64,000 nt of DNA. It comes from Podarcis bocagei. Lineage: Eukaryota. Shown here one piece after another: positions 4,895 to 63,449 of the stretch. A program made the translations under genes and the position numbers. The notes under the pieces were generated by a model. The model was not told the DNA's origin. It was given only the letters and a program-made list of their open reading frames with translations, and made no database searches. Every line of letters begins with the position of its first letter. Positions within the stretch are counted from its first letter, which is position 1. The stretch lies in NCBI GenBank assembly GCA_964188305.1, contig OZ076887.1; one strand, 5' to 3'.

Positions 4895-15633
<10,739 letters not shown>

Positions 15634-39700: not shown

Positions 39701-40326
39701 CATATTATGTACAGTGGCATGGCCCAGAGACACCCCTGCCCCCAAGTAACTCCATTAAGATCAGGAGGCACTCTGAACGGCAGCCTTTGAGGTTCAAAGT
39801 GCTCTGTCAATGGAATAAAATATAGAAGCTCTCCCTCAAAGAAATGTGCAGCTAGCTACTCTTTCTGTTTATATGATGGGAGCTGGAGGGGGCTGGGGAG
39901 AGTCAGGGTAAAGAATCAGAGCAACTAATTCCCTTGGTTTCTCTTGTTTATAGGCATTTCTTTCTTGACATTTCATCTGCTACAAGCATTAAGTCCTGTA
40001 CATCCTCTGTACAACTACTCCACACTCAACAGTAGCCTACAAGCTTCAGTAGCCAAAGCAAAAAATGTCTTCTAAAATCAGTTGAATCTTCTCAAAACAG
40101 CACTTAAGCTATTATGTGATTCTTAGCATGCATTTCAAATTTCTGCTGATAATAAAGTCTGTCTTTCAAATGTTTTAAAAAAACTAAACCACGGAGAAAG
40201 TTGATAAATGGAAGAAATGTACCTGTATCTCTTTTTTCTAGAGTGTGATCTGGATCTTGACCTTGAACTTGACTGTGATCTGGATTTTGATCTTGAAGAA
40301 TGTGATCTAGTGTTAGAGCGACCCAT
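21728..40326 (-). CDS. BCLAF1: Bcl-2-associated transcription factor 1, whole spliced CDS, about 918 aa
   Basis: Eleven phase-consistent exons: 40223-40326, 38735-39640, 36830-37498, 36567-36736, 31724-31829, 29160-29244, 28164-28339, 26918-27098, 24096-24242, 21851-22057, 21728-21733 (2757 nt). RS-rich N-terminus [17 protein letters not shown]; THRAP3/BCLAF1 motifs [65 protein letters not shown]. Confidence 0.97.
21851..22057 (-). CDS. BCLAF1: BCLAF1 exon ([19 protein letters not shown]...[11 protein letters not shown]...EEK)
   Basis: Manual translation; donor GTAAGT. Confidence 0.93.
23700..23835. mobile_element. Palindromic hAT-like MITE
   Basis: CAGGCACCCCCAAACT ... AGTTTGGGGACGCCT with inner inverted ACTACAACTCCCATCAT/ATGATGGGAATTGTAGT; degenerate ..GTAAGT TSD. 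Confidence 0.7.
24096..24242 (-). CDS. BCLAF1: BCLAF1 147-nt exon ([11 protein letters not shown]...[14 protein letters not shown])
   Basis: Within ORF 24045..24332; symmetric phase 0/0. Confidence 0.93.
26918..27098 (-). CDS. BCLAF1: BCLAF1 exon ([13 protein letters not shown]...GRPRGTF)
   Basis: Manual translation; donor GTGAGT. Confidence 0.92.
27801..28074. other. Assembly gap (274 N) in a BCLAF1 intron
   Basis: Run of N. The flanking exons join in frame, so no coding exon is needed in the gap. Confidence 0.99.
28164..28339 (-). CDS. BCLAF1: BCLAF1 exon ([22 protein letters not shown]...)
   Basis: Manual translation. Confidence 0.93.
29160..29244 (-). CDS. BCLAF1: BCLAF1 exon ([28 protein letters not shown])
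   Basis: Manual translation. Confidence 0.93.
31724..31829 (-). CDS. BCLAF1: BCLAF1 exon ([19 protein letters not shown]...SPEIHR)
   Basis: Manual translation; splice sites and phase fit. Confidence 0.93.
33233..33276. repeat. Perfect 22-bp tandem duplication
   Basis: TCTCAAATTGGCATGAATAAAA x2. Confidence 0.9.
36567..36736 (-). CDS. BCLAF1: BCLAF1 exon ([31 protein letters not shown]...HHVK)
   Basis: Within ORF 36556..36783. Confidence 0.95.
36830..37498 (-). CDS. BCLAF1: BCLAF1 exon 5 (includes exon-5a segment)
   Basis: Within ORF 36826..37533; 669 nt. Confidence 0.96.
38735..39640 (-). CDS. BCLAF1: BCLAF1 large RS-domain exon
   Basis: Within ORF 38731..39669; 906 nt. Confidence 0.97.
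40223..40326 (-). CDS. BCLAF1: BCLAF1 first coding exon
   Basis: [34 protein letters not shown]; donor GTACAT. Confidence 0.95.
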
Positions 40327-41784
40327 TTTCCCCCCAGTAGCTTACACCTACCAAATAGAAAATAGTAAATTGAAACACATTACCTTCGTTTCAGGATAAT
40401 TAATTCATATATGGATAGCGGTAAATTATGTTTTTAAAAAAAAAAAATTCAAGAAGAAGCCATCCCACTCTTCCAAAAAAACTTTTCAAATTATCACTAA
40501 TCTCCTCAAACATTCTGTTCCACATCATGGCAAAGATCAGTGGAAAGCACTAAAGGTAACAGGGAACAAAAATGTCAACTATTCTTTCAATATTCACACT
40601 CAATACATTTAATGCTTATGCATTTTTGTGTGTGTGCTGTTCCTTTCTTGATTAAAAAAACATTTCATTTATCCTTGTCTATATTGAACTAAAAATAGTC
40701 ACTAACTACTCTACTGTTCTTTACCCCAAAGATCTACCTTTGATCCATAACTCAGAAAGTCACTCAAAACACCAATTCTTTTTGTACTAACATAGCTAGA
40801 TCAAAACAGACTAGTAACATAGACTTCAATGAACAAAGTCATCACTGGTGTATTCCCCATCACTGAAGTACTGCAATACAGTATAAATATGACAGCCAAG
40901 GCAAGAGCTATCTCATTAATATATTTTAGTAGCTCATATTCAATGAAAAGCAAAAACAAAACAAAAAACCAAAAGACAAAATAGCTAACTCAGAACAGAC
41001 AGAAAAATATTATTTTCCTTTCTTTCCTAGCTTTCCTCCATACTTGAAAATTTGGCTGTTTTCATGTAACCTGCCTAATGCATTCAGTAATTCAACCAAG
41101 TCATTTTACTTTCCTTTTAAACAAAGGCAACACTTTAAGTCATTATTTGACAATAAAAGTCAAAACAGCCATCTTCATTCCAATTTACCAATCTATGCCG
41201 AGTTTGGGTTGAAGAAATGATAACTGAGATCTAATCTGAAATTGTTGAAATTTGGAATTTTAGAGATCTGAATATATTGGATTTTAAAAGTTATAAACTT
41301 CGAGAAATAAGGACCAAAAGGAACAAGTTTACAGCCACTTTAATAAATTAGTACCATTATTTAAAACATTATTATTACTTATTATGAAAAACACACTGGA
41401 TCACAGTAACACTGGACATATTGCTTCTTCACACAAGGGTTAGGCATCCACCAATAGTTTAATCCTTATGTTTAATTCACATGCAGGGGAACTCCCTAAC
41501 TCACTGAGGGTTTGAGACCCATCGGCTACCTTCACCTGGTTTACCCAGGTAGTTGAAGCCATTTCCAGGGTGTCTCATGCAGATAAATTTTAGGAGTCAC
41601 AGGTGAGAACTGAGTTCAGGGTGGGGACCAAAGGTGGAGAAACTACCCCAGAAGGAGCATGATGTGCCCCCCACCAGAGGTACTACCAGAGCTAAGGACT
41701 AAACCCTACACAAATATGAAGTGGAGTCCCTAAGGCAATTGGATGGCATCTTGCATGCCTCGTTCTGGCACCTCTAGCAACCAA

Positions 41785-42965: not shown

Positions 42966-45449
42966 CTGTTTTTAAAAAACAAAACAAAAGCAAATGTTAT
43001 TTGACTGCATAGTTAATACAGGTTTTAAAAAATGCTTGAAGTATTTAAACAGAGAAGATCTGAAGCACAGTCTGATGTGGTGGGTTATGTTGTTTCAAAC
43101 TCAAAGCAACATTTACTCAGTGCAACACTGTCTCACAGCCTGCTGAGTTTAAGTTGATTGTTCAGAAATACAGTACATGTTCACATTGACTTAATTTATT
43201 GGCCTTTCCAAAAATTGCTCAGTAAGAATATATAAGCATTGTCTCACAACGTTCTTGTATCTTACAGTAACCTATCCTAGTGCCACCACCTATTGTGGTG
43301 CCACAAATTAATAAAGATGTTTGGGTTTGGGGCATAAAAGCCAGAGCTTAGTCAGAGCCCCTTACCTGCTTGGGAGCAACAGGAAACCTAAATCTAAGGC
43401 CCTATCCTGATGTGAAGGTGCCAATGCTCTTTGCCTCTGAATGCAGTGCCCAATCCACCTCAAGTGCTGAACAATGGTATAAGGGACACACACAGAAAAC
43501 ATTTTCTGCATGTAAGAGCTCTCAATGAATCACAAAAAATATATGCTCAACATATATGGTTGCTTATACCTCAATACCTGCCTCTTTTCTGAATATGAAT
43601 GCAATTTTCAGTATTCCAGAATAGTTAAAGAATTTATTTTATTTAGTGCATTTATATCCTGTCTTTCTTTCATCATAGAGCTCAAAGTGGCATATATGGG
43701 ATTATCAGGTCGTCTCCCATCCAGGTGCTAACTAGTTACCAGACCTGTTTAACTTAAGCTTCAATGTGTGTTCTCAGACCAAGCAATGTAAACCTACACA
43801 TTTAGCAAGATAAAAATGAACTTTTTTATTTAAAAAAGCCAGATTAAAATTAATCACACATTTTTAATGTTATCTGGTAACAACCAACCCAAATGAACAC
43901 ATCTCACAATGCTTCCAGAACTGCAAGTCTATGACAAATCCATAATGGGAGAAAAATACTGCACATACTAATCTGCACCACTTACTAGCCACTTTTAAAG
44001 TGATTTATACTTCTAACATGGGAAAGTACAACGGACTCTCTTCAAAAAATGTTCTGACTAGTAAGTAACAGTGCTGTTACTTATTAACCCTACAGCAATA
44101 ACTCCAAGATGTCATTTATATACCACCCTTCTGCTGGCCTAAGCGTTCTGTAGAACTGTGATGGTTCTGTCAGGAGCTGATGAAATCTGCTCCCTGGTCT
44201 AAACTTCTTCCTTCTGTCTTCCCTCAAGATATAGTTCTTAAGAAGGTACTCAATAATTTTTCAGCTTGATTTTTTTTTATTGTCTATGCAAATCTCATTA
44301 AAGAAAACATTAAAAAAGAAAAGCTATGAGCCACCCTCCAGCACACACTCCCAAGATACATAAATGAGAGCTAGTTTGGTACAGCAGTTAGAGTGCTTAA
44401 AATAATAATAAGCATGACACACCCATTCATTAAGGAGCGTTCCTGCTGCATTTTGCATGATTTACTGATCCAGCTTGTTTTTTCTGATAAGCCTCTGCTG
44501 ATGTTGGAATATTCTACCACCACTATCAAGTGTGACTTGACCATTCAATTACTTCTGATGCAGACAGAGTAGACTGCCTGTTCCATCTCAGTGTGAGTCA
44601 CTGAGCTAGGCTTACCAGCTTTCAGAACAGGAGAGCAAGTAATCCTGACATTTACACTCTGAAAGTAAAACCTTCTCAGGTATAAGTGACCTGTTCCTTG
44701 CCATCATAATTTGGAAAATGTTGCAGCCTAACAGTGAAGTCTTTTCTTTCCTGAGTGAAAGTACAGGTACAAGCCCTAATACAATTTGCCAATACAATCT
44801 CCCTTAATGCTATTTGAAGATCTTAATACTTAGAGAAGGAAGTATACCATATCAAGAACCATAGCTCAATGGTAGAGCAACTGCTGATTGACATGCCCCG
44901 GATACAGCAAGGAAAAGACTGAAACCACAGAATGCAGCTGCCTGTCAGTGAAGACACTACTTAGCTAGATAGACTAATGAGCTGACTTGGTGTAAGGCAG
45001 CTTCCCAAGTGCCAAATAATAATTATACCAAGTTCACTGTGGAGAATGAGGCAAAGAGTCATAATTAACAACTCTTTTCTTGCTTTGACTTGGGTAAGCT
45101 CAATCACATGAAATGAATTGAAAGGGCTTGGATCACACTGTAAATTTTACCTCCAGGTGCTGCTCTCAGAGGACACATTTGCATGAGCCTGGGGCAATAT
45201 CCACACACTGCTGTAGTTGAAAGATACTGCAAATTACTGCGATAAGTCATTTTTTGTATCTGTTGGTAATGAAATTCTTAAGGATACACCCCCTTTCTCC
45301 AATATAAGGCCTCCCGTGAAACACTCTTGAGCATCATTTGGGAGCAAATTTAATCGTGCGGACTTGCCCAGAGTCCTGGCACTGTGTGAAGAAGGCACGA
45401 TCCACTGACTACTCTGCAAACCGTTTCGCCTTTCTCAACAAAAGGTCTG

Positions 45450-46700
45450 GTGCTCAACTGGGAGCCGCAGCCAGTTACGGGCAGCTGCCTGGCAGGGCAC
45501 ATGCATGGCGACATGCGTGTTCGAGGCATCCATTTAGGGCCTTCGGTGCGGCGAGTGTGCCGGGAGGCTGCCAAGGTCTCTCTCCTTCCCCCTAGCTACA
45601 CCTCGTCGCCCTTCAACTGATTGGTCAGGGTGGCGAAAGATGGAGGCAAGTCAAAACGTTATCAGGCGCCGCTCGTCGCGCGGAAAAGACTAATCAGAAA
45701 GCGACGGCCCCCCCCGGCTCTCGAGGGGCGAGGCGGGCCGCTCTCCTTGGGCCCGCCCAGCCGGCCTCGTTCCGGCCTACCTGTTTCCTCCCCCCGCCCC
45801 ATGGGGGAAAGAGGCGGGAGGGAACGGGGAGAGATGACGGGCCCTGGTCCAAACAAGGGAGGCTGCGCGCAGTGTGTGTGTGTGAGGGAGATGGGAGCCG
45901 CCTCTAGTCCCCCTCCCCTCAGTTCCTCCCGCCCTTGTGAGGCAGACCAAGCCCCTCCCCCGCCTTCAGTTAGAAAAAGGGAGGGGGGTTGCGAAGGGAA
46001 GAACTCGAGGGAATTTTTCAAAAAATAACGGCGTCTGGAAGCGGGGGGCGGGGGAGGGTTGCCGAGCGCGCTAACGAGGCTTCTCGCGCCGGAGCTCCGA
46101 AAGCTGGCGGTGGGGGGGGGGGCGTTTGGAGGGAGCGGCACCCATGGCGTCCGAGGAAAAACCCGAGCAGGCAAAAGACCTCTCTGGCTCCAGCCCTCCT
46201 CGGGCCGTTCGAAGTCCTGCGTTGGCTATGGCTCACCCTTCTCTGAGCGACAGCTCCCGTTCAGCTCTCTACCGCTCGGCGGCCATTTCCAGTCTCGGCG
46301 AAGGAAAGAAATGGGGGGTGGCGGGGGAGAGAGACAGAGAGGAAGGAACAACCATAGAGAGAGAAAACCACTTTCTGCGACGTTAGAATAGCACGATGGC
46401 ATCACTTCCGCTCGGAGAGAGGGCGGAGAGGAAATATGACCTCTTTACCTTGGCGTCTCCGGCTACCCGTATGAAAGATGGCGGTTAGAAGCGGCCGAAG
46501 CGGTGTGAGTGACGCTAGCTGCCATGGCAGGAAGTCTTCGGGATCACGTGATCTTTTCTTGTGTTGGAAGGACACGGAGGAAAAAGCCTATGCTGCTGAG
46601 GCGCATGCGCCCTGTGGCGCTTTTTTTTTCTTGTTAGGTATCGTCTGCGCAACAAATCACGGGTAATAAATAGGGTTGATTGCTCGAGTCTTCAGAGTTT
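45450..46700. promoter_or_regulatory. CpG island; BCLAF1 promoter, probably bidirectional
   Basis: CpG-dense. ETS CACTTCCG 46403-46410; YY1 sites in opposite orientations (46279-46288 minus, 46475-46484 plus); palindrome CTGCCATGGCAG 46519-46530; E-box GATCACGTGATC 46542-46553; NRF1 GCGCATGCGC 46601-46610. Confidence 0.85.
46237..46390 (-). other. BCLAF1: BCLAF1 non-coding exon 1
   Basis: Pyrimidine-rich leader with YY1-like AAATGGCCGC; donor GTGAGC at 46231-46236. TSS position is approximate. Confidence 0.7.
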
Positions 46701-48375: not shown

Positions 48376-48459
48376 TGGAGGCAGTGGCCAGGAAGCAAGG
48401 GTGGAATTTGTCTTAATAGAAGTCAGGACAGACTAAGATAAGAAAAGAAACAGCTAGGC

Positions 48460-48938
48460 CAGTGTTTCCCAACCACTGTTCCGCGGCACACTAGTGTGCC
48501 GCGAGATGTTGCCTGGTGTGCCGCGAGATGTTGCCTGGAGGGAGGCGGGCGAGTCGGGCGACAAGAGGCGGGGCGGCGGCGGCAAGGAGAGGCCGCCCAG
48601 CGCGGGGCTCTCGCCGTCTGCCTGCCTGGCTGCCTGCGAGCTCGGCGGGCAGCGCCTCCGTCCGCAGCGCCCGCCTCGCGGCTCTCATTCCCTGCCAAAG
48701 CTCACCCAGCCAAGCCGCGCTCTCCTTCCTGCCTCGCTTTGCTGCCTCCTCCCCCTCCACCCCCAAAGCTTGGAGGTTCCCCAGCAAGGGGGAGGGGAAA
48801 AAATTGAAACTTACACTTTCGTGCGTCCCTCCCGGCGTGACGCTGCACGCTGACATCACGGGGCTGTAATGGTGGTGTGCCTCGAGATTTTTTTCATCAA
48901 ACAAGTGTGCCTTTGCCCAAAAAGGTTGGGAAACACTG
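48460..48938. mobile_element. Non-autonomous hAT transposon (MITE), young
   Basis: Perfect 15-bp TIRs CAGTGTTTCCCAACC / GGTTGGGAAACACTG; perfect 8-bp TSD AGCTAGGC; GC/CpG-rich interior. Confidence 0.92.
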
Positions 48939-50015: not shown

Positions 50016-50241
50016 ATGGGTCAGCTGTGTACAAAGTGTGTCCAGTTGCTTTGTGACTTGGCTCTCTCAGTAAAAACACTGTCTTTGGGTCTGGTGCAGG
50101 ATATTCAGGAGTGCTTGGGTCAGATCCATGAGTGCCCCTGTCTGAAGCGGAAAAACTTTAAAACAAAGCAGCTATACAAGCCTGCCCTTCAGACCCAGGA
50201 AGAGGAGATTGCTCAGGAGTTTCTGCAGCAGATTGAAAGAG
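50016..50241 (+). CDS. Vac8-like exon 1 (MGQLCTKC...QEFLQQIER)
   Basis: ORF 50016..50318; donor GTGAGA. Confidence 0.85.
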
Positions 50242-53200
50242 GTGAGAAGTTTCTGTTATTGAAGGTGGGGCAGCCAAAGTTGGAGAGATGTTTACTTGAG
50301 CTCGGTTGCTTTGTTTAAGATCATGCAGTTCAGTGATCCTATAAAGTGAATGACACAGAGCTGTTTATGCTTCTGCTCTTAAGAGCAATGAAGGGAGAAT
50401 GGGGGAACCAGTATTTCACCAGCACCAAATATTCAGACAAAGCAGTGGATCCCAGTTCCAGGCTGATTGATTAAATTACTCTCATTCAGCATTTGAATTC
50501 CCAGTTCTACAAAAGGCATCATAGCAAGGGGTAGACCTGTTAGCCTCTTGCATAAAAGCAACAAGAAACATTGTGGCATCTTCAAAGACTAACAAACACT
50601 TTTGCTACAAGCACGAGCACTTTCCTAAGCCAACACTGAAATACTCTCTGTAAAAACCTCTTAGGTATTAGAGGATTGGATTTGAATTTATTATTTGAAA
50701 ACAGAAAGACGTCAAATGGAATGCTGTCCACTTCTTCCAACTCTTAAGTTCTCCCATCTTTTGTTTTCATCCTTGATAATCAAGGAAATAGCATGGCTAA
50801 GCTGGTTTGCTAAATACAGTAACAGAAATCCAAGTTTGGAATGTCCCAACTACTCTCACAAACTGGCATATATAACAACTTTTTTCCTCACATGAGGTTT
50901 GGACTGCAAAAACGAATGGGGGGGGGATTAATAGTTTTTGCGGTCATTTGTTCAGCTCTATCTAGTATGCTAATTTTAAATGAGAGAATATTCCTACATG
51001 GAAGTTTGTCTCTCTTGTGTTTTATCTGTTGCTTTAAATTCTGTGCATTTGGACTCTTCAGGTATTTAACTTCTTCTGACACAATTCAGACTCTGTTATT
51101 ATCACATCTTTCTTAAGGTTTTGAAATGTCACCACTTGGCAAGGTCTCCCTGGAGGCTCTGAGGACCTTGGCGTTTTCAGAGAACCCTGGCTTGCAAAAG
51201 TCTGCTGCTCTCTATTACTTGAACATAAATCATCAAAACTGTAAGACCCATTCCATACTCTTTTTTTTTTTAATTTGTAGAAACCTGGAGAAGCAAAACA
51301 ATTTCTCCCAAACATAGCTGAGTTGTGCCCAAGGCAGTCTTATTGGTTCCCTAGAATGTGTGAATTGGGTCTAGCCCCTTCTAATGCAAGTTCTGTGAAT
51401 ATTTACTTGGAGCTCAGATAATGTGGCAGTAACTTTTGTTACTAGTCTCCCATTTTATTATTTTATAGAGGTGGGCGAGTGCTAGCTGGCTTTTTACTCA
51501 TATGAGAGGTTGGCAGAAGAGGGGCTAGTAAAAATAAGTAATACAGGTTTAGTTTTCATGTGAGTTTGCACAGACAGCTGAAAGGAGGGCTACAAGGTAT
51601 TTTGAAAAGCAAAGCAGGCCATCTAGGTGTTGCTCTAAAAGCATCAACTGTTTGAAGATGTAAGGGACAAGTGTTCCAGAAGAGCTTTTTACAATCAGCA
51701 TTTCATCTCATTCTTGCAGTGAACATCCAGCTGCCTCGAGAGCATCTGGAAATATACTATGCTTTGTTGAAGTCTAATGACTTGGAGGTTCAGCAGATTT
51801 CATCGTCATCCCTTGTGAATTTCTTACTGGAAGGAAATGGTGAGTAAATGCCCAAGATACCATAGCCTTAAGTCTCCATCAGCATCTGCTGTGATCTTAG
51901 GAACTACCACTGTCTAGTTGCCCTGGTATTTTATTTGAAGGGCAAGATATAAATTCCCAAACTAAAAAGTGATAATCAGTAGGATGGATGTTTGCCCTGA
52001 TAAAATGTGTGGGTTTTTTTTGGGGGGGGGGAGCATTCATTCAGAGGATAGGTTTTGCTTACTTCTCGTACCAAAAGGGTGAGAAATCATTTATTCTGGT
52101 GTAAGATGTACTGATATTGTGTGCTGATGGCAATCCTTTTCTCTCTCCAGTATATAGCTGAATTAAAGGCACTTTAAAAATAACATTTACTCCTGCCTTT
52201 ACTGACAAACAGTAACCAAGGATCATGTCGTCCAAATGGATCTAATTGAGCCAATTCTGGAACTGCTTGAGTCTGAAGATGCCACCGTCCAGTGTAATTC
52301 CTGTGCCTGCATAATGACACTAGCTGTCACAGGTGAGGAGCGTGCCCAAAGCATAGCGCAATAATCAGGTCCAGGGACAACGTCACATCCACACCTTGTG
52401 ATTGGGAGGTAATGATGTGCCTTATCGTTATATAAATTCTGAATCAAGAAGAGCTGAATTCTGCGAGCAGAGTGGATTATTCACACTGGTATGCTATAAC
52501 TAGTCGTGGCCAGTGTAGTGGGGCAGAGCTTGTGGAGGCACACTTCTGACACCAGTTTGACTGCAGTTTACCTGGATGGCTCTGGGTGGTGACACGCTTG
52601 GTGCTTCACAGACGCACAAGTGGAGCCAATGCAGTCCTCCAGGATTGCCTAAGAACTGCCTAGTCACTGGCCCCATACTGTGCAATAAATATAAAGTTGG
52701 CCTTGGAGTCCTGGGTTCAAATCTTAATAAATGATGAAGTGTACTTTCTAAAGTCAGGTGACCCATAGCAATAAGCTTCTTCACAAAAACCTGATGGTAA
52801 ACTCTTAACATTATTCATTCTGCCACTAGGCACCCAGGACCCCCAACTCATATGCTGCAACTGTTTTGTGCTGTCCACTCTCTGTTCTTCAAAGTGTGCC
52901 TGGAGGAACATGGATACTTCTTCCTCCAAAGACACCTCGTTGATTTCTATTTTGCCCTGTTGTTTTGCCAGATGTCAGCCATGAAGCCATCGCAACAGCA
53001 GGAGGAGTGGTACCCTTACTGGCCCTTTCTAAATCCTACGATCCAAGAGTCCAACAAAATGCAGTTGGAGCAATTTTCAACCTCACACAATCAGGTATTA
53101 GGCTGCAGAGGATTTATTTCAATGGGCCAAGTGCATTGACACAGAAATTTGTGGCAAGGGAAACTTATCGTCAAAGCTATTGTTTTCTTTAAAATGAAAT

Positions 53201-56200
53201 GTTTTACTTCAAGTACAATGCTAAATCATGTCTACTCAGCGGGAAAGCCAATTGATTCCAATTGGGCTTATTCCCAAATGCTATTTTTAGCTCTTAACTA
53301 TGCAGTGATGATAAAGAGCATGTTCATTTGGTCAAAATAGCTCATTAGCAATACCACTCTTCCCTTGCAGAATGGATTCAGCAAATTTTGTTTCGACAAG
53401 GTGCTCTTCCAGTCCTCACCCTTTTGTTACAGTCTCCCGACTCGGAAGTACAGGTAAACTTGACATTAAAACAGTTTTTGAGCATTCAAAGCTGTGGAAA
53501 TAGTCAGCTGCTCAACTGAACCTACAGACACAGGAAAAGATAGACGAGACAGTAGTCTTTTAACATTTTAACTTCCAGAAATTAGTAATTCAATGGTGAT
53601 GCACATACTTTTACTTGGAGGGGGGGTACTACATAGGGTTGTGCACCTTGGAAATGAACTGCTAACCTCTTTAGTGAAATGAAGAAACAGGTCATTGCAG
53701 CTTGAAGAAAGGTGCTCGTTTCATAGTTCAGATTTGTTGTAGGGTTAAAGAAAATAGCCAGGGGGTATTCCAGTTCCTCAGTTCTGTTCTCAACTTTTGT
53801 TTGGAAATAGCTATTAATAGGCTCTAACCTGTTTGAGATTCAAGAACTGAACAAATACTTCTTTCTCATCTTCAAATAGAGAAATGCAAACATGTAAATA
53901 CATGACTGGAGTGTAGATTTTTATTCTATTCTTACTATTACTCCTTACTATTACTATTACTATTACTCCTGAGAATTTTAAACAGCCTCATGAAGAGCAT
54001 TTTATGAATGCAAGGAGTGCCATTTGCCTAGCAGAAGGGGACAAAATAGTGTGTGAATGATTTGTTAAGAAAAGGGATCTGGTCATCTCACCGTTGCAGT
54101 ATTCTCCCCCTTTGTTGACTCTTAGACATCCAGACTCTCTACACAATGATAATTTTCTAATCATATAGGCAAATAGAGTATTTCATAGACCCATAGAATT
54201 GTAAAGTTGGAAGGGAATCCAAGGGTCATTTCAATACATGCTGGTTGACACAGTTGGCAGGGTCTAGTGCAGGACCAGCACATTCTGTGTGGACTGTAGC
54301 GATCACAGTTGTGTCTCGTTGGACAAATATTCTTTTTTTCCTGGGACATTCCCAAAACTCCTGGAGGTGTACTACAGTGCCAATCCAGAAAATGCAGGGA
54401 GATGCTGTATGCAAATACTCTTCTCAATTTGATCACCCTAGGAACGCCATCATCAGTCATGGTCCCTTTCATTTGCTGTGAGGTCTTGACCACAGTTTAA
54501 GAACCCTTGGCCACAAGCTTTCCTTTCTCTAAATCACAACACTTCTCCTTCTTACAGTATTATAGCTGTGCAGCTCTGAGCAACATGGCCACAAACTCGC
54601 AGCACCATAAAGCCATGCTCCAAACCGGTGATAGGTTTCTTCTGCGGATGCTCCTTTTCCTTCTGTATTCATCTGTAGACAAGGTAAAGCTGTCGATTAT
54701 GCAGGTTTGTTTTACTAACAGCCTCCCTGGTTTATTCAGAAATATTATATTGATACCAGTGGGATGTATTTCCAAGTAAGGTACTGTATGCTTAGGACTG
54801 CAGGCTAAATATCTTGTGTTCAGGGAAATGACTGAAAAGATGCTTTCTTCAGCATGGGGGCGCAAGAATACACAAAGGCTGGAGTTAGCTAGATGTGGCA
54901 TCTTCCATGAATTTCTAAGAGATCAATCTCAGAATCTCCTACAGTCAGAGGGGATTCCATGTTTAAATAATGGTGAGATCTCTTGGTTCAATATTTTCAT
55001 TCTCACAGTGATGGCCTGGGAATATAGGGATGGGGTTTTTCCTAATCTCTGCCTGGGGAAGATTGTGAGGTAGTGTGGGGAGTAAAATTTCACAATTACA
55101 GATCTTCCCAAACAAATGCAAAATTAACTGGATTGTTCACTAAGGCTGCATACACACCATGGATTTAAAGCACGTGACTTCCCTCAGAGTATCCGGAGCA
55201 CTGTAGTTTACCCCTCACAGAGCTTCAATTTGTAGCACTGTTAAACTACAGTTCCATTATTCTTTTCTTTTTTTGGGGGGGTTGTCATGTGTTTTAAGTA
55301 TGTTTTACATGTATGGTGTGTATGCACCTTAAGTCAAGAGCAATTTGTTCTTCTGAAAGGCTACACATCCTTGTACTATTAGGCACCCATAAGTAGCGCT
55401 TTTTTGAGTATCTCTCAGATATCTATGGCGCACTCTCACAGTTGGCTTTAAAGGCTTAGTTTTGCCTCATGTTGCCACAGAGGACATGCTTACATTTCAA
55501 CTTTACCCATCATTGACACATAATCCTGTCAGAACATTTTGGAGGTTTAGCAAGTATTGCACGAAGCTATTTGTAGACTAGTCAGTTTTGCGGCCGTTTC
55601 ACAGCCAAAAGTTGTTTCTCTGTTGGGTTCTGATTTCTTTGTTTTCTGCAACTAGGTTTCCAACCAGGCTTGTGTCTGTCTCAGGAATTTAGCCGCAAGT
55701 GGTAAGTATTACAGTCCTAGCATGCTAATAAACGAAAATTTGCAGTCACTTAAAACATACAAAAATAGAACCCCCTCCTTCCTGTGTTTTGTACAGTCTA
55801 GCCTCTGGAAGGAATGTCCTCAAGTCACTCTTTGTTCTTTTAAGTAAGATGAATACCATGTTTTGGTTTCAGGCACGTGGATGGTGTGACTTTTTTTTTT
55901 TTTTTTGAAAGTTAATAAACCCTTCAGTTACCAGAGGCTGTGAGAGTGACAGTACTGTTGTTCTAAAGTATACCAACAAACACGGATTCAGTTTTTTAGA
56001 GAAGGTGACTGCAAACCAATCCAGCATTCAGACTGATGTAAAGATTAGTAAAGCTTGATTGACCAATACCTTACAATGCTCAAGGCACATTTCTGCCACA
56101 GATGTTCAGGGCGGGGGAGAGATCATGTGGAAGTTTTACACCATCTATAAAAGGAGAAAAGAGACTGAAGAAGGAGTTGGTGAAAAATATCCCTGGTCAC

Positions 56201-56523
56201 TGACATTTTTGCTCATGTGCTTGTAATGAAAGATCTCTCTCTGTGTTTTAAACTCACAAGCAAGATCATTAATATAGATTATAACTACAAATCCATACAC
56301 TTCCTTTTACCATTCTTAAACTGTCAATTCTGTGAGGAAAAAGTAGACAAGAGTATGGATACACACACACACACACAGCTTTTTCTGGGGGGTCGCAGGG
56401 GGACGCATACCCCTAAACATTTTGTGAATCTAAGTTTGGCCTCATTGAGGGGCAGTATTTCAATAGTATTCTTATGAATAGGAAAATGAGAGTACCCCTA
56501 TACATTCCCCCCCGAAAAACGCA

Positions 56524-56555
<32 letters not shown>

Positions 56556-59500
56556 TCTAATCCAGTGGTTATCTAATCCAGAGGCTGCAGTCAACCACTT
56601 GCACCTAGCAGCTGATTTTGAACAACCACAATCCCAACCAAATTTACAGAAACACAACTCTCTGTACCCTTTCTCTCAATTTCAGTCCCCTGATTCTGAA
56701 GAGAATTCTTTCCAGCAGTGCCTTTCTACAAACATTTTGCATTGCTCAAACATCCTATTGGTCTATCTTTCCCCCTTTCTTTTATGCCATTGGCCAGAAC
56801 ACCGATCCAACCCTCTTGTGCAGTTTGGTCTTCATCTTCTTTTGACTTTTCATTAAAATGAGAAGTTTAACTTCTATACTATCATAACATAAGATTGCCT
56901 GATCTGTGAAGTCCAGCTGACTTGATTGAGTCAGTCTAGAGGAGGCCCCTTTTTCTCACAAATCCTTTTCTCCAAAGCAGCTTCTATTGATCTGCACACA
57001 TGACCTTGAGCAACCTTCTCATTTTCCAAACAGAGAGTGGTCAGACCAGCATCATTGCTTTGCAGATCCCGTCCCACCTGCTCCCTCTCCTGGCATCTAA
57101 CAAGAAAGACACTCAGCACAATTCCATCATTCTTCTCCGGATTTTATCCCAGCACCCAGACAACCAGGTACACGTTTCTGTTTTATACTACCCTTTGCCT
57201 TGTAAGCTTTAGTCAAATGTGCATGGCCGTAATATTCCGAGGCAGCTCAACCTTGAAAGATGACAGTGGACAAAAGTTTCATCAAAGGTAACACATTTAA
57301 AATGACAGTTTGACACGGCCAGGTGATCAGTAGACAATAATTCAAAATTCATTCTGAAAAGGCTTCAGCATGCATTTGAAAGTGTGGGATGATGTGGAAA
57401 GGGAGCGCTGGGAACAAATTCTGATTATAATCATATTGGGATCTAATCTGTCTTCTCAAGATTCATATTCTGTAGCAAATATCCATTTGTGGTTGTGATG
57501 GATGGTATAGCTCCTTTGGCATTGGAGAAAATGTTCTGTGACAGAGGAAACCTGAACAATTAATCCTCAGTAGAGATGTTTATATTGTCTTCTGTTGGGT
57601 CAGCTTTTCATCTTGGTTTGCTCAGACTACTTGTTTCAATGCCCTCCAGCCTGGGGTTGTTTTTTTAAAGACCTTTTCAAGGATTCCCATTCTGCTCTGA
57701 CCTGAATTCCAAGTGAAGTAGAAAAGGAGCTCTCCATGGGAACCCCAGCAGGAAAACAAACTGTGGGACAAAGCTAACATTTCCAACCAAGATGAACTAA
57801 TGTTTCAGTGGTTACCAACACTACACTGTGTTCCTAGGGAAGAAGAAATCATTTGTTCTTTGGTGACTTTGGGTTTGGTTGACTTCATAGCACCTTCATT
57901 CCTTAACAAACGGAAAAGCCCCACATCTTCATAATATAAACTTGCCTGCAAAAATGCATTCGGATGTGGGAGTGACATACGAGTCTCAATATGGTGGGAC
58001 ACAGGCATCAATAAAACGAATGGAGGTTGTAACACGGGAGGTTTGTGGTGGAACAGGAAAGTCAAATCCTGCATGCGCCATTGGATGGACACACACATTT
58101 CAGTATCATCTGATGTGGTTTGGAGGTAGTGGAGGCTCGATTTCTCCGCATTGCTGCCGTGAGTTGAGACTGAAACACGAAGAGACAATTTGTGGAGCTT
58201 TTCATAGTTCTTCATAATTGTAGCTCCCAAATTGCAATACACTTGTTTCAGTTCATCCTAAATGTAAAGAGTTTTAAAAACTTAAAGCATATCTCTTTGA
58301 TTCCTTAGTAATTCATTCACTCTACTCTTTTTGGTGCCTGCTTTAAAAAAAAAAAAAAGCATGTTTGTTTCCAAAGGCCTGTCTGGACATGCAGAATATT
58401 GGCATGTGTTTTCTGGTTTTAGTTTATTGCTGATTTTTAATTTTTTTAATGTTTTAAATACTAGTTTTAATTGGTGTTTTTTTTTACTGATAATTTTATT
58501 GTTTTTATTCTTTTTTTACCCGCTTTGAGCTTTTTATTAACAATCAAGTGATGTATATCTATATCTCAATCACCCATCTCTAGTCCCATTCACAGTGGTA
58601 TGGTAGAACCATGTCTCTTCTGCTGCCTTCATTTCAGCTACTCACTGGCTACCTTTCCCTTTGCAGGATGCACTGATGTGTGATGAAGTGCTGCAGGCGG
58701 TAGGGAACCTGCTGCTCGCCTGGAAAATGGACCCCGTGATTGTAGGTCACGCTGCCTGCTTTATTAAAAATCTCAGCCTTTCCAGAAGCATAGAGGTGAG
58801 TGCCAAGTCTCCCTTTCAGGATTACACATTGTTCTGAAGGCTTCACTTCACTGTTTCTCTTACTAAGTGATATTAAAAGGAGGTTACCAGATTTCCCCCC
58901 CAATGAATCTGGGGACACTTTTCAACTTCAATGAATTTTGTATGGGGACTGATTTGTAAATCTGGGGACTGTCTGGTAACAGGGACATCTGGTAACCTTA
59001 TAATTAAAATGAAACATCGTCTTTGCTTCATTCAAGGGAGTAAATGACCACGTGTTTCAAAAAGTACACAAGAAAAATCTTACTAACAAATAAAAAGCAA
59101 GTTGTGACTTTTACGCCTTCACTGTAGGCTTTTTGGAAATTTGGCTTTGTTGGTATACATGCTTTTTCAACTAGGTTGTTCCTCCTCCTCCTCCTCCTCC
59201 TCCTCCTCCTCCTTCATTAAATTTGTGTACTGTTCTCCATTTGAAGACCATAGGGCAGTTCACAACATAAAAATACAAAATGAGAACACAAAATGCATAA
59301 TAAAACAAAACCAAAAACCAACCAATAACGCCCCTTCCCACAAACCCATTTAAAAGGCCATAGAATTCTCAACCAACCAAAGGCCTGGTTATAGAGAAAC
59401 ATTTTTGCCTGGCACCTAAGGATATATAATGAAGGCACCAGGCAAGCCTCCCTGGGGAGAGCATTCCACAAACAGGGAGCCACTGCAGAAAAGGCCCATT

Positions 59501-62500
59501 CTCATGTTGCCATCCTCCAGACCTCTCATGGAGGAGGCACACAAAGAAGGGCCTTCGATGATAATTGCTCAAGAAAGTGGAAACCCACTGTGTATGGATA
59601 AATGTTTGCAGGAAATATGCCATATATTCTTGGCTCCTCATACCATCTCCCAGATTGCCTTGTTGACGGAAGTCCAGCCGTCATTAAATGGTGCTCAGCA
59701 TAAAATAAAGACACAGTGAGCCAGCTATATTTTCAGGAAGGTAAGAGCAGCTCCTTCGTCCACTCTCCTCCGATTTTATTCTCCCCTCTCGCATGGCCGT
59801 TTGCCAATGTCTCACGTTACCTCATCCGGTCATGGCTTTTACCCACCCATCGCCATATAAGGTAATTACTGCCCAGAGGGGGAACATAACTCCATATAAG
59901 GTTATGCACTTAATACACTGCAAGGCACGGACATGCAGGTCACCGAGGTCAGCGAGGCACCAGGTGGCGCTACAAGCCTTTGCCATGACTTCATGGCTCC
60001 CACACCTTGTTATCACACACTTGATGGTTTCTTGTGAAATGAAGGCTACTGTAACACATATCATTGCAGACTTACTCTGTATTCATTAATTTCAAGCACA
60101 TCCGTGTAATTTGAACACTCCTGGTGGGACAGTCTCAGGGCGTCATGATGCATAACTAGAGCATTTAATAGAACATGCATTTGCATAGATTAAATCCCCA
60201 CAGGTGCCTTTGTTGCACACATTTCTGGGCTTAACAGCTGAATAGGCACAGCCCTGAAGGCCCAAGGCAAACTAAGAGCTTGGCATCTATAATTGCGGGG
60301 GGGGGGGGGGCGGCACCACAATTTTCAGAATGAATGTAATAACATTATCTACTTTTGTTATTTGCAGAGAGTCATAGAAAGTCCGTGCATTGAAGGACTT
60401 TTTCAAGCTGTCCAGAGTGTAGACTTTCTAGAAGAGGAATCTCTTCACTGTGTAATGTCTTGTCTTGTTGACCTGATGAAACATGGTAAGGGGGCATTCA
60501 GTGCTGAGTGGATGGGTTGAGAGCACACACATTTTGTACTCATTAATTTCCGTTGCTGCTGCCAACTTTACAGCACAGTGTTATGCATGTCTGCTCAGAA
60601 GGAAGTGCTGTAGCCTTTACCTATGCAAAAGTCAGTGTGCATAGGGTTGCAGCAGCCTTACAATTTTGGGACACAGAGGGAACCAAAGGGCAGTCGTAAA
60701 AATCAACAGATTCCCACAGTCAGTTCTACATTATCCACTGGCTGCATAGCTACCAGAGCTGCTAATAGGAGTGAAACACCGCAGACAAGTGAATTTAATC
60801 CCAACTTAAAGAGTTGTATCAGTAACGTAGTGTTGACATTGCTAGTAATTTCTCTAGTGCTTCTAGACCAGCGGAGGCAAACATGGTGCCCTCTAGGTGT
60901 TTACTAGCTGAATGTATGGAAAGGGAGGTAGCAGAGCAGCAGGGCATCTAATTTCCCATTGGTGAAACCCTCCCTAAGGAATCTTCCCACCTATATCTGC
61001 TTCTGAACATTTTGACCCACCCCACCTTAGTCTTCTGAAATCCATTTTACTGGCCTCCCAAGCTCTGCTAGTGTCTTTTCAGCCTTGGCCCTAGGCCTGT
61101 TCATTTGTCTTCTTTTATTTCAACTGTGCTGATTTAGTCTTTTACTCTGCTCTTCTACCACCAGAGGGAGCCACAGTGTGCATGCTGGAATCGGTGGAGG
61201 ACTCAGTGGTATGCAGTCTGGCGACACTGGCTGGCCAAGTGGAACAAGCAGAGCTTTCGTTCCACGCTGCCCTTGTGATCAAACACCTCCTACAGCACAG
61301 TACGTATCAATGTAAAAGATCTGATGTTTGCATTTCCAAAATGCCTGATATCACTCAGGTGACAACAACAGAAGTCCCATGGGCCCAAACAGGTTGAATA
61401 GCAGGGGAGAGCACTGTACCAGTCAGCTTTGACAAAGCTTTTATTTATTTTCCAATCCTGCTAATTCTAGGATAGTTTTCAGAGAGTTCCCTGGGCTACA
61501 ATAGGACTCCCTAAGATGTTTTTCCCCCTCTGGACTAAGTGGCAGCTGCATCTATCAGTTGTCCCACACCAGCAGACTCCTTTGGGGGTAAAGAATACAT
61601 GTTGAGTTCATGGCAGGAGCTTGTGTTTTGCGTGTGTACATCCTTTTCTCAGGATTACATTTCCCTGTTGAAGACTGCACAAAGCCGCTAAAATATTTGT
61701 GCGTCACTGCGCACCATATGAAGTGATGCTTAATTTGAGTAACCAATGATAACATAAACATGATGTTTCTGTTGAATGCACAATATAACATTTAAAAATA
61801 ACAGCTGTCATAAGTGTCAGATTCAGAATAATCACAGTGAGTGTATATTATTATTATTATTATTATAGCAGCCAAAATCATCAAGAAATCTTATCATTCC
61901 GATTTACAAACTTCAACTTTATGAACCAAACCTGAAGTTTAAGGCTCTATTCTCCATGCCATACTGGCATTCATGACTGGTATATATGAATTCTGAATAT
62001 TATTAATTAGCTTTATAAAATCTTTATTAAGGTCTCAAGGCAAATTACATAGTAAATAAATATAAAAAACACAATAAAAATGATCACACTAAATATCTGC
62101 CCAAGCATACATTTTCCACCATAAAATTATCATAAGCATTATCAAATTATGAATACCAATGTATAATTTGTCATTCACCCAACAACTTAGTAACAAGAAA
62201 ACCAAGTAGTGCATCAGCAATGTAATGGGGTATCAACATTTTACAGTGTGTGTTTACACAGAAGAAATCCTACTTTGTTCAGTGACTTACTCCCAGGTTA
62301 AGTGTGTAAAATGTTGCCTCGTGCATTCAGTTTTGTAATTATTCCTGTCTCCAAATTAATTGCACAGAAGAGGTGGTGTCTTTGTTGAAATCTCATATGA
62401 GCAAGGTGCAGCAATACCTCATCAAGTATCTTATTCACCAAGAGAATCGCTTTCAGCATCTGGGCATATCCACTCTCTGCATATTACAGAAAGGTATGGA

Positions 62501-63449
62501 CTGCTGTATCACTCGCCACATAATATCCCATGGGATTCCTATGCTATGGCATAACAGCTAAGCTCATCAGTACTTACCAGAAGCACCGCAGCTATAATGC
62601 ACAGCTGAGTCGTGCCTGTTTCTGGTAATGAAAACCAAAGTCCTCCTTTAAAAAAGGTTTGGTGGAAAGTTAATTGACTCTCATTTCACTGAGAATGCAA
62701 TCAGAACTTTATACAGGCTCATTTGCCGTATTCATTACAAGCTTCCTACTGGAACTGAATCTGTTCTCATAATCTCATATATGAATCCTGGAAACAGCTA
62801 TTTACGGTTCTCATAAAAAAGTGGGGAGCAGTCTTCTTTTTTGGCGTTTTAAAAAAATCAGAGTGGAAAAGTAGTTATATATGCACCTTCCAGCACCAAA
62901 CCTGACTTACTTTTTAAAAAAATGTATCCGTTAACATGGAATGCAAAATAACTTCCACGCATAAATGTTTGATAAATGGCTTAGATTATCATCGCACTCT
63001 GTGTCTGAAAGTGAGGAAATACCCCTAGCAAAGAAAGCAGGAGGCAAGATTCTCAGGAGACATTGTTGAACAAGTAAACTTACTCTTGGGAAGTATTAAA
63101 ACAACAAGGAATATATTAGGTGTGAGTAATAGATAACTCCTGTTCTCAAAGTTGGTCAATTTGGCTTTGATATGAATGTCAGATTTTTGTAGATCCAAGC
63201 TGAATGCAAGACAGGAGAACAAACCCTCTCTCCAATGTTTTGTAAAGTTATGGACTAGGGCAAGATGTACACATATCGACGAGTTGTGCAGGTCTAGAAG
63301 TTGAGGTGTTGCTTCCCTATTTTTTAGATGCAGAGTTTTCATCAGCATTCAACCAAAGCCAACTGAAGAAGCACCTTGGCCAAGTCCGTCAACAAATTGC
63401 AGAAACACAGGAGCTTCTCAGTATTGCTGTCAGACATATGGACACCTGA
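50016..63449 (+). CDS. Vac8-like armadillo-repeat protein, whole spliced CDS, about 576 aa
   Basis: Fourteen phase-consistent GT-AG exons: 50016-50241, 51118-51240, 51720-51839, 52213-52332, 52972-53094, 53371-53453, 54558-54683, 55656-55701, 57034-57167, 58667-58795, 60368-60485, 61165-61299, 62368-62493, 63328-63449 (1731 nt, no internal stop). Strong Kozak context (ATC ATG G). ARM-type repeats collinear with fungal Vac8. Confidence 0.88.
51118..51240 (+). CDS. Vac8-like exon 2 ([22 protein letters not shown])
   Basis: Acceptor tcttaag, donor GTAAGA. Confidence 0.88.
51720..51839 (+). CDS. Vac8-like exon 3 ([30 protein letters not shown])
   Basis: Acceptor ttcttgcag, donor GTGAGT. Confidence 0.88.
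52213..52332 (+). CDS. Vac8-like exon 4 ([34 protein letters not shown])
   Basis: Acceptor aaacag, donor GTGAGG. Confidence 0.88.
52972..53094 (+). CDS. Vac8-like exon 5 ([35 protein letters not shown])
   Basis: Within ORF 52965..53192; canonical ARM repeat. Confidence 0.9.
53371..53453 (+). CDS. Vac8-like exon 6 ([19 protein letters not shown])
   Basis: Acceptor cccttgcag, donor GTAAAC. Confidence 0.88.
54558..54683 (+). CDS. Vac8-like exon 7 ([11 protein letters not shown]...SSVDK)
   Basis: Within ORF 54507..54779. Confidence 0.88.
55144..55328. mobile_element. Palindromic MITE, PIF/Harbinger-like
   Basis: TIRs GGCTGCATACACACCAT / ATGGTGTGTATGCACC flanked by TAA/TTA. Confidence 0.6.
55656..55701 (+). 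CDS. Vac8-like exon 8 ([15 protein letters not shown])
   Basis: 46-nt exon, donor GTAAGT. Confidence 0.85.
56360..56555. repeat. Short interspersed element flanked by (CA)n and (GA)n microsatellites; related copy at about 47847-47970
   Basis: Both sites share ttttctggggg..cgcagggg..cccctaaacattt. Confidence 0.55.
57034..57167 (+). CDS. Vac8-like exon 9 ([17 protein letters not shown]...[12 protein letters not shown])
   Basis: Within ORF 57000..57212. Confidence 0.85.
58667..58795 (+). CDS. Vac8-like exon 10 ([16 protein letters not shown]...[10 protein letters not shown])
   Basis: Acceptor tttgcag, donor GTGAGT. Confidence 0.85.
59180..59560 (-). mobile_element. L2-like LINE 3' fragment with (CCT)n microsatellite at its tail
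   Basis: ORF 59217..59483 APCLWNALPREACLVPSLYILRCQAK matches the L2 ORF2 C-terminus; (CCT)n at 59180-59213. Confidence 0.75.
59853..59972. promoter_or_regulatory. Candidate enhancer/insulator motif cluster
   Basis: CArG CCATATAAGG twice (59853, 59892), NKX site CACTTAA (59907), DR3 AGGTCAccgAGGTCA (59937-59951), CTCF-like GCACCAGGTGGCGC (59957-59970). Confidence 0.55.
60368..60485 (+). CDS. Vac8-like exon 11 ([15 protein letters not shown]...LMKH)
   Basis: Within ORF 60293..60520; donor GTAAGG. Confidence 0.82.
61165..61299 (+). CDS. Vac8-like exon 12 (...[16 protein letters not shown])
   Basis: Overlaps ORF 61176..61397; donor GTACGT. Confidence 0.82.
62368..62493 (+). CDS. Vac8-like exon 13 ([27 protein letters not shown])
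   Basis: Overlaps ORF 62373..62561; donor GTATGG. Confidence 0.85.
63328..63449 (+). CDS. Vac8-like last coding exon (DAEFSSAF...RHMDT*)
   Basis: Acceptor tttttag; TGA at 63447-63449. Confidence 0.8.

Follow-up and report, generated by a model that had tools for sequence, protein, structure and literature searches.

A Vac8-like armadillo-repeat gene of the lizard Podarcis bocagei, with a constrained ligand groove and a basic triad that probably matches yeast by state

The Vac8 protein of Saccharomyces cerevisiae, an armadillo (ARM) repeat solenoid, has been solved in complex with three partners, Nvj1 (PDB 5XJG), Atg13 (6KBM and 6KBN) and Vac17 (7YCJ), and contacts in ARM4-7 are common to all three. 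Atg13 is contacted by Vac8 residues Y226, Y227, L192, N193, N186, N145, R317 and E395, of which R317 bonds Atg13 His669; interface II (ARM2-6) is tight and essential, and mutations in interface I, which holds R317, left Atg13 binding unaffected. Vac17 is contacted by R317, N318, N277, N234 and H196, with R317 bonding a backbone carbonyl. Importin-alpha and beta-catenin share this binding mode, in which asparagine side chains of helix 3 grip the ligand backbone in a concave groove. Here we describe a Vac8-like gene within 64,000 nucleotides of the Podarcis bocagei genome (assembly GCA_964188305.1, contig OZ076887.1), which we refer to in full as the window. An earlier note on this DNA had aligned three basic residues of the predicted product with yeast Vac8 R276, R317 and R359 and, as these remain basic, proposed that a ligand-binding mode is conserved. 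We consider it probable that the gene is an intact member of the Vac8 family, in which the triad reflects identity by state and not conservation, the ARM1-6 groove has been maintained, and the product would act as a lipid-anchored adaptor.

The gene is complete and intact on the plus strand (coding sequence 50016-63449; 14 coding exons) and encodes a product of 576 amino acids (aa), with GT-AG introns and canonical splice sites throughout. The model was built manually, guided by open frames and splice sites, and exon 13 came to light through comparison with orthologues. When the window exons were mapped on the Podarcis muralis locus, the resulting translation was identical to the annotated P. 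muralis protein (P0253), which validates the gene model. The exons, with the sites that are discussed below, are:

50016..50241, plus strand: exon 1, residues 1-76; ATG at 50016; N-terminus MGQLCTKCVQLLC; the H1 helix begins here
51118..51240, plus strand: exon 2, residues 76-117; ARM1; LEALRTLAFSEN at 51150-51185; A89, L93 and N98
51720..51839, plus strand: exon 3, residues 117-157; ARM2; N150 (Vac8 N111)
52213..52332, plus strand: exon 4, residues 157-197; ARM3; invariant N185 at 52296-98 (Vac8 N145); T192 in place of Vac8 N152
52972..53094, plus strand: exon 5, residues 197-238; ARM4; N226 and N233 (Vac8 N186 and N193); F232 (Vac8 L192)
53371..53453, plus strand: exon 6, residues 238-265; first part of ARM5
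54558..54683, plus strand: exon 7, residues 266-307; helix 3 of ARM5, and ARM6; Y266 and Y267 at 54558-63 (Vac8 Y226 and Y227); N274 at 54582-84 (Vac8 N234)
55656..55701, plus strand: exon 8 (46 base pairs, bp), residues 308-323; end of ARM6 helix 3; R317, codon AGG at 55683-85 (Vac8 R276); invariant N318 at 55686-88 (Vac8 N277)
57034..57167, plus strand: exon 9, residues 323-367; ARM7; R358, codon CGG at 57138-40 (Vac8 R317); I359 in place of Vac8 N318
58667..58795, plus strand: exon 10, residues 368-410; ARM8; K401, codon AAA at 58766-68 (Vac8 R359); N402 (Vac8 N360)
60368..60485, plus strand: exon 11, residues 411-450; ARM9
61165..61299, plus strand: exon 12, residues 450-495; ARM10
62368..62493, plus strand: exon 13, residues 495-537; ARM11
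63328..63449, plus strand: exon 14, residues 537-576; stop codon TGA at 63447-49

The three codons that the earlier note had read on the plus strand stand: AGG (55683-55685) encodes the R of VCLRNLA, CGG (57138-57140) the R of ILLRILS, and AAA (58766-58768) the K of CFIKNLS. Its reading of exon 9, from IPSH onwards, began too late, as the true start at 57034 lies 29 bases upstream and adds ESGQTSIIALQ. The Pfam Arm family (PF00514) matches exon 4 (E 5e-6) and exon 5 (E 3e-7) above the gathering score, and is also carried by the orthologues. Isoforms of 532-536 aa are annotated in many other species, consistent with skipping of exon 13.

Among solved structures, sequence, profile and fold matches are all best to Vac8 and collinear over the full length, and mark the product as a genuine Vac8-family member. 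With the 98%-identical P. muralis protein as query, the top solved-structure match is S. cerevisiae Vac8 (5xjg_A; phmmer E 2.2e-50, residues 84-532), and a profile of 46 orthologues matches Vac8 from the H1 helix to ARM11 (E 5e-83, residues 59-534); beta-catenin and importin-alpha, the next natural proteins, follow at E ~1e-12 to 1e-21. Exon 9 alone, searched against the PDB, gave no match. The AlphaFold2 model of the same P. muralis protein is an all-helical ARM solenoid (predicted local distance difference test 87.7; predicted template-modelling, TM, score 0.78), for which the top five Foldseek matches in the PDB are all Vac8 complexes with Vac17, Nvj1 or Atg13 (TM 0.79-0.83, root-mean-square deviation 3.7-6.2 A, ~29% identity), with designed ARM proteins and beta-catenin ranked below them. 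Helix 60-75 of this model is equivalent to H1, and aligns with Vac8 H1 in the profile alignment. The protein thus comprises approximately 12 ARM repeats after an H1 helix, preceded by a Cys-rich N-terminus (MGQLC..C). Of the vertebrate proteins that we found, this 'vacuolar protein 8-like' product is the nearest to fungal Vac8.

The likeness to yeast Vac8 encompasses a similar size, H1 with ~12 ARM repeats collinear to ARM11, a Gly2/Cys-rich N-terminus, and the Asn and Tyr groove residues of ARM3-6, which are retained in the lizard. The two proteins differ, however, in that lizard ARM7-11 are strongly diverged; the lizard has other residues in place of Vac8 N318, N152, H196, K160, V103 and A107, and of N62, A70 and E73 in the dimer interface; and the lizard protein has an extra invariant CxC motif (40-42) and a longer N-terminal helix. 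The binding segments of the known Vac8 partners are, moreover, fungal. Importin-alpha and beta-catenin are far more distant again (E ~1e-12 versus 1e-50; TM 0.55-0.63), and lack both the lipid-anchor motif and the H1 helix.

The closest orthologue, P. muralis LOC114594173, annotated 'vacuolar protein 8-like', is the same gene: each of its 14 exons is shared, at 97.5-100% nucleotide identity, and its product is likewise 576 aa long (98.1% protein identity; 11 aa differences); a mean tblastn identity of 86% to Podarcis is an artefact of matches that run into introns. Intron 9 (57168-58666) differs in length by ~2.4 kilobases (kb), spanning 1499 bp in the window versus 3901 bp in P. muralis, presumably owing to a repeat insertion or deletion between these close relatives. 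The window copy of this intron also contains a minus-strand open frame of 150 aa (57808-58257), for which Pfam gave no match. The Zootoca orthologue shares 93.4% protein identity with the window protein. The pN/pS ratio was 0.29 versus P. muralis, and dN/dS was 0.33 versus Zootoca (0.23 in ARM1-6 and 0.42 in ARM7-11). In lacertids, this intact Vac8-like gene is therefore subject to purifying selection.

A library-wide search with exon 5 (40 aa) was dominated by multi-repeat ARM proteins; with orthologues sorted by per-hit identity and position, it led to two full-length 580-aa relatives. Searches seeded with these two and with the Podarcis protein returned more than 150 orthologues of 570-590 aa, which NCBI and UniProt name automatically as 'vacuolar protein 8-like', 'Vacuolar protein 8' or 'uncharacterized LOC'. 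Their hosts among fishes are chimaera, sharks, rays, bichir, sturgeon, gars, bowfin, many teleosts and coelacanth, and among tetrapods caecilians, salamander, frogs, tuatara, lizards, snakes, turtles, crocodilians and birds; the bowfin protein matched sequences from eels, tarpon, bonefish, smelts, milkfish, salmon, tuna and gars. No mammalian orthologue occurred in the orthologue lists, which comprised several hundred proteins and spanned every other jawed-vertebrate class.

As to the register of the three basic residues, HMMER aligned R317, R358 and K401 (hereafter positions 1, 2 and 3) with Vac8 R276 (LALRNLA), R317 (ACIRNIS) and R359 (STLRNLA) in ungapped blocks of high posterior probability, and the 46-orthologue profile yielded the same register. 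The match proposed in the earlier note is thus exact in both alignments. Native Vac8 numbers were obtained as chain index + 9, which was checked on A51, L55, N60, N62 and R317. In the AlphaFold2 model the three residues lie near the C-terminal ends of helix 3 in ARM6-8 (helices 306-319, 347-361 and 390-403). As the equivalent helix-3 positions are basic in only 12.4% of cases among 137 unrelated ARM proteins, three basic residues in a row are non-trivial; phylogeny, and not chance statistics, accounts for the pattern. The name 'cationic triad' is said to come from Jeong et al. in 2017, who reportedly assigned R276 and R359 roles in Nvj1 and Atg13 binding; the phrase was not found in our literature search, which did not cover that paper.

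Two distant fungal Vac8 proteins carry R/R/R at the triad columns. Across the vertebrates, the three positions read:

Chimaera, sharks and rays (12 cartilaginous fishes): position 1, R (E in chimaera, K in two); position 2, S (one G, one K); position 3, H, Q or N
Sturgeon and bowfin: position 1, R; position 2, S; position 3, R or C
Gar: position 1, T; position 2, C; position 3, H
Teleosts: position 1, R in eels, tarpon and bonefish, and K, W or Q in others; position 2, S; position 3, A, R or T
Coelacanth: position 1, R; position 2, S; position 3, K
Frogs: position 1, N (18/18); position 2, C; position 3, Q
Salamander: position 1, R; position 2, C; position 3, E
Caecilians: position 1, R; position 2, W; position 3, E
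Tuatara: position 1 unreadable (annotation gap); position 2, W; position 3, K
Turtles and crocodilians: position 1, R; position 2, W (R in one turtle); position 3, K
Birds: position 1, R; position 2, W; position 3, mostly K
Lizards (17 species): position 1, R; position 2, R; position 3, mostly K (R in one skink, Q in agamids)
Snakes (8 species): position 1, R; position 2, Q; position 3, mostly K (R in one)

Models from tuatara (Sphenodon) and one bichir (Erpetoichthys) have aberrant sequence over the 46-bp exon 8 (approximately model residues 309-323), which probably reflects an exon that was mis-annotated or missed, and not a genuine absence of the R-N motif. Another, more complete bichir model reads CLQNLS at that place.

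Across about 150 orthologues, then, the residue varies freely at both position 2 and position 3, and in part at position 1 (frogs and teleosts), such that the triad as a whole has not remained basic by descent; this is the pattern that the earlier note had named as refuting its reading. In a balanced set of 34 vertebrates, the column of position 2 ranks at the 87th percentile of variability within the ARM domain, that of position 3 at the 82nd, and that of position 1 at the 31st, and N318, which adjoins R317 in the lizard protein, is invariant. The column of yeast N318, the partner of yeast R317, is occupied in vertebrates by I, M, L, T, A, S, V or K. The commonest residues at the triad-equivalent helix-3 position of unrelated ARM proteins are A, G, R, S, W and C; that these include S, C, W and R, four of the main states at position 2, is consistent with a surface site that tolerates change. 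The series S, C, W, R and Q at position 2 can be walked by single-base steps, and the CGG codon of the window is one step from both TGG (W) and CAG (Q), a path that we infer from the residue states and the window codon. Given W in relatives and a codon one base from TGG, the lizard arginine is best read as a secondary change and not as a retained residue: R358 appears to have replaced an ancestral W on the lizard lineage, with a further change to Q in snakes. K401 represents one of the many residues seen at a site that varies freely, and only R317-N318 constitutes an inherited, constrained part of the lizard triad. A conserved triad would have implied deeply conserved Vac8 docking in vertebrates, which these data contradict. 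More broadly, identity by state at three 'functional' residues in two distant species can be secondary, and orthologues should be checked first.

Constraint lies elsewhere in the protein. Mean column entropy is 0.64-0.79 bits in ARM1-6, which share 27-54% identity with fungal Vac8, versus 1.35-1.64 bits and 10-33% identity in ARM7-11, which therefore evolve about twice as freely. Within ARM1-6, helix 3, which forms the groove, is more constrained than the rest of each repeat (0.24-0.68 versus 0.77-0.96 bits), reaching the lowest entropy in the protein in ARM4 (0.24 bits); helix 3 of ARM7, in contrast, shows no extra constraint (1.56 versus 1.50 bits). Seven yeast groove residues of ARM2-6 that contact Atg13, Nvj1 and Vac17 are all kept, with lizard N185, N226, N233, Y266, Y267, N274 and N318 corresponding to Vac8 N145, N186, N193, Y226, Y227, N234 and N277, respectively, and these are invariant or nearly so among vertebrates. 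Their yeast counterparts hold the backbone and a key Phe of Atg13 at interface II, and the backbone of Vac17. The surface under selection would thus appear, from the pattern of substitution, to be the concave groove lined by helix 3 of ARM1-6.

At the N-terminus, the protein starts MGQLCTKC, with G2 (50019-21), C5 (50028-30) and C8 (50037-39), and Thr at position 6, and a CxC motif follows at C40 (50133-35) and C42 (50139-41), for which the aligned N-termini of fungal Vac8 proteins offer no equivalent. Across 46 vertebrate orthologues, C5, C8, C40 and C42 never vary, whereas G2 does: squamates, birds, crocodilians, frogs and several fishes have it, and turtles, caecilian and sharks have A, D or E instead. 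In the AlphaFold model, a long N-terminal helix (6-38) precedes a low-confidence loop (41-58). By homology with Vac8, the protein is probably a membrane-anchored adaptor, in which C5 and C8 would be palmitoylated and G2, in this species, probably myristoylated. An extended, disordered segment of a partner protein may occupy the ARM2-6 groove, where it would be gripped by the ladder of asparagines and the pair of tyrosines. The C-terminal repeats, including positions 2 and 3 of the triad, would be free to vary, or may make weak or lineage-specific contacts.

Several observations weigh against this interpretation, or narrow it. Five interface-II residues have changed between Vac8 and the lizard protein (V103 to Q142, A107 to S146, N152 to T192, K160 to H200 and H196 to Q236), which makes it improbable that any ligand is held in precisely the yeast manner. 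The absence of G2 from sharks, turtles and caecilian argues against myristoylation as a family-wide feature. The proposed partner, localisation and lipid modification each derive from homology with Vac8, and should be read as predictions. Finally, arginine occupies position 2 in all 17 of the non-snake squamates sampled, which could reflect lineage-specific constraint as opposed to drift.

The distribution of the gene also bears on which vertebrate protein corresponds to Vac8. ARMC3 is a different gene; its product of ~870 aa has a C-terminal non-ARM domain and is not known to carry an N-terminal acylation motif. Among the ARM proteins retrieved here, inspection by Pfam brought up no ARMC3. 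In recent papers on Vac8, ARMC3 is called the mammalian Vac8 homologue or orthologue, and is an ARM-repeat protein linked to autophagy. The literature thus treats ARMC3 as the Vac8 counterpart, while no mammalian copy of the VAC8-like gene was seen. It is conceivable, and we put this forward tentatively, that VAC8-like and not ARMC3 is the true vertebrate orthologue of Vac8, lost in mammals and still serving elsewhere as a lipid-anchored organelle adaptor via ARM2-6; the gene would have been kept in cartilaginous and ray-finned fishes, coelacanth, amphibians and sauropsids, at the BCLAF1-MAP7 locus at least in lacertids, and lizards would additionally have re-created the triad by the W-to-R change. 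If so, mammalian cell biology is seeking a Vac8 counterpart which mammals specifically lack.

That re-creation might in turn have been adaptive and parallel to yeast, the change at residue 358 having created or enhanced binding along ARM6-8 of a lineage-specific, probably acidic or backbone-exposed, partner. We regard such convergence as unlikely. The arginine is fixed in 17/17 non-snake squamates (geckos, skinks, lacertids, anguimorphs, iguanians and an amphisbaenian), most of which also have K or R at position 3, and purifying selection acts on the gene in lacertids. Fixation across the clade would, however, also follow from one neutral substitution in its ancestor. Further, snakes carry Q at position 2 and agamids carry Q at position 3, and the site toggles, given the independent R in one turtle. 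The residue with which yeast R317 works, N318, is I, M or L in squamates, and ARM7 is the repeat with the least groove constraint.

It is more improbable still that the triad has been conserved between yeast and vertebrates as the mark of a ligand-binding mode, with ATG13 or an NVJ-like tether as the partner. The exact alignment with R276, R317 and R359, the R/R/R of two distant fungal proteins, and the scarcity of basic residues at such positions in unrelated ARM proteins (12.4%) would each be expected if this were so. Against it, position 2 takes the states S, C, W, R, Q, G and K, and position 3 K, R, Q, E, H, A, T, C and N; position 1 reads N in 18/18 frogs, and many ray-finned fishes have K, W, Q or T there; tuatara, the sister to squamates, has W at position 2 and snakes Q; and helix 3 of ARM7 is without extra constraint. 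A binding mode therefore cannot be read from a triad which the vertebrate family has not kept. Vertebrate ATG13, one of the partners suggested in the earlier note, is a weak candidate, since the Vac8-binding part of Atg13 lies within residues 522-738 and is restricted to yeast Atg13, which makes binding by the yeast mode unlikely, and since interface I, with Vac8 R317, is dispensable for Atg13 binding.

The earlier note had also aligned ARM1 residues implicated in Vac8 self-association, and its A51, L55 and N60 do correspond to lizard A89, L93 and N98 in the HMMER alignment. The matched residues of the ARM1 dimer interface (A51, L52, L55, N60 and L63) are mostly at helix-core positions, and N62, A70 and E73 are replaced by G100, Y108 and N111, such that ARM1 self-association is not inferable for the lizard protein.

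Least credible of all is a decaying or non-functional relic with meaningless residue patterns, for although no mammalian orthologue was seen in the orthologue lists, no functional literature was found and expression was low in the one dataset found, 14/14 exons are intact with canonical splice sites, every other class of jawed vertebrates has orthologues of the same length, whose alignment shows dozens of invariant columns, and the intact frame together with dN/dS values of 0.23-0.42 excludes a pseudogene.

The gene is annotated in many genomes under essentially the name used in the earlier note, and is thus not new. In the literature we found no functional study of the vertebrate gene, and only chicken LOC421690 in a pituitary transcriptome table. 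Non-mammalian jawed vertebrates possess a selectively maintained and unstudied protein, which resembles yeast Vac8 over its full length, with an ARM2-6 groove and invariant N-terminal cysteines.

In P. muralis, the Vac8-like gene lies between a BCLAF1/THRAP3-family gene and MAP7. In the window, a BCLAF1-family gene likewise lies upstream, head-to-head with the Vac8-like gene, and exons of a mitochondrial fission regulator gene lie further upstream, both genes being on the minus strand:

36829-37539, minus strand: BCLAF1/THRAP3-family exon (PF15440, E 6e-30)
38734-39672, minus strand: BCLAF1/THRAP3-family exon (PF15440, E 2.5e-29)
8060-8425, minus strand: mitochondrial fission regulator exon (PF05308, E 5e-20)
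9426-9707, minus strand: mitochondrial fission regulator exon (PF05308, E 2e-12)
6320-6730, minus strand: possibly a further mitochondrial fission regulator exon

We take this neighbourhood to be the MTFR2-BCLAF1-MAP7 block of conserved vertebrate synteny. Further open frames rich in arginine and serine occur on the minus strand at 40138-40341, 28163-28378 and 26876-27148, and a run of 274 N (27801-28074) falls within the region of the BCLAF1-family gene. Between that gene and the ATG of the Vac8-like gene are two GC-rich, CpG-island-like stretches (45300-46700 and 48440-48900), which are probably promoters and 5' untranslated exons of the divergent genes. Another GC-rich stretch at ~16.0-17.1 kb may be the promoter of the mitochondrial fission regulator gene. 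A 238-aa open frame on the plus strand (12086-12799) contains LDYCNSL and has no Pfam match at E 0.01; it resembles the 3' part of open reading frame 2 of a CR1/L2-type long interspersed nuclear element, and is probably a retroelement fragment.

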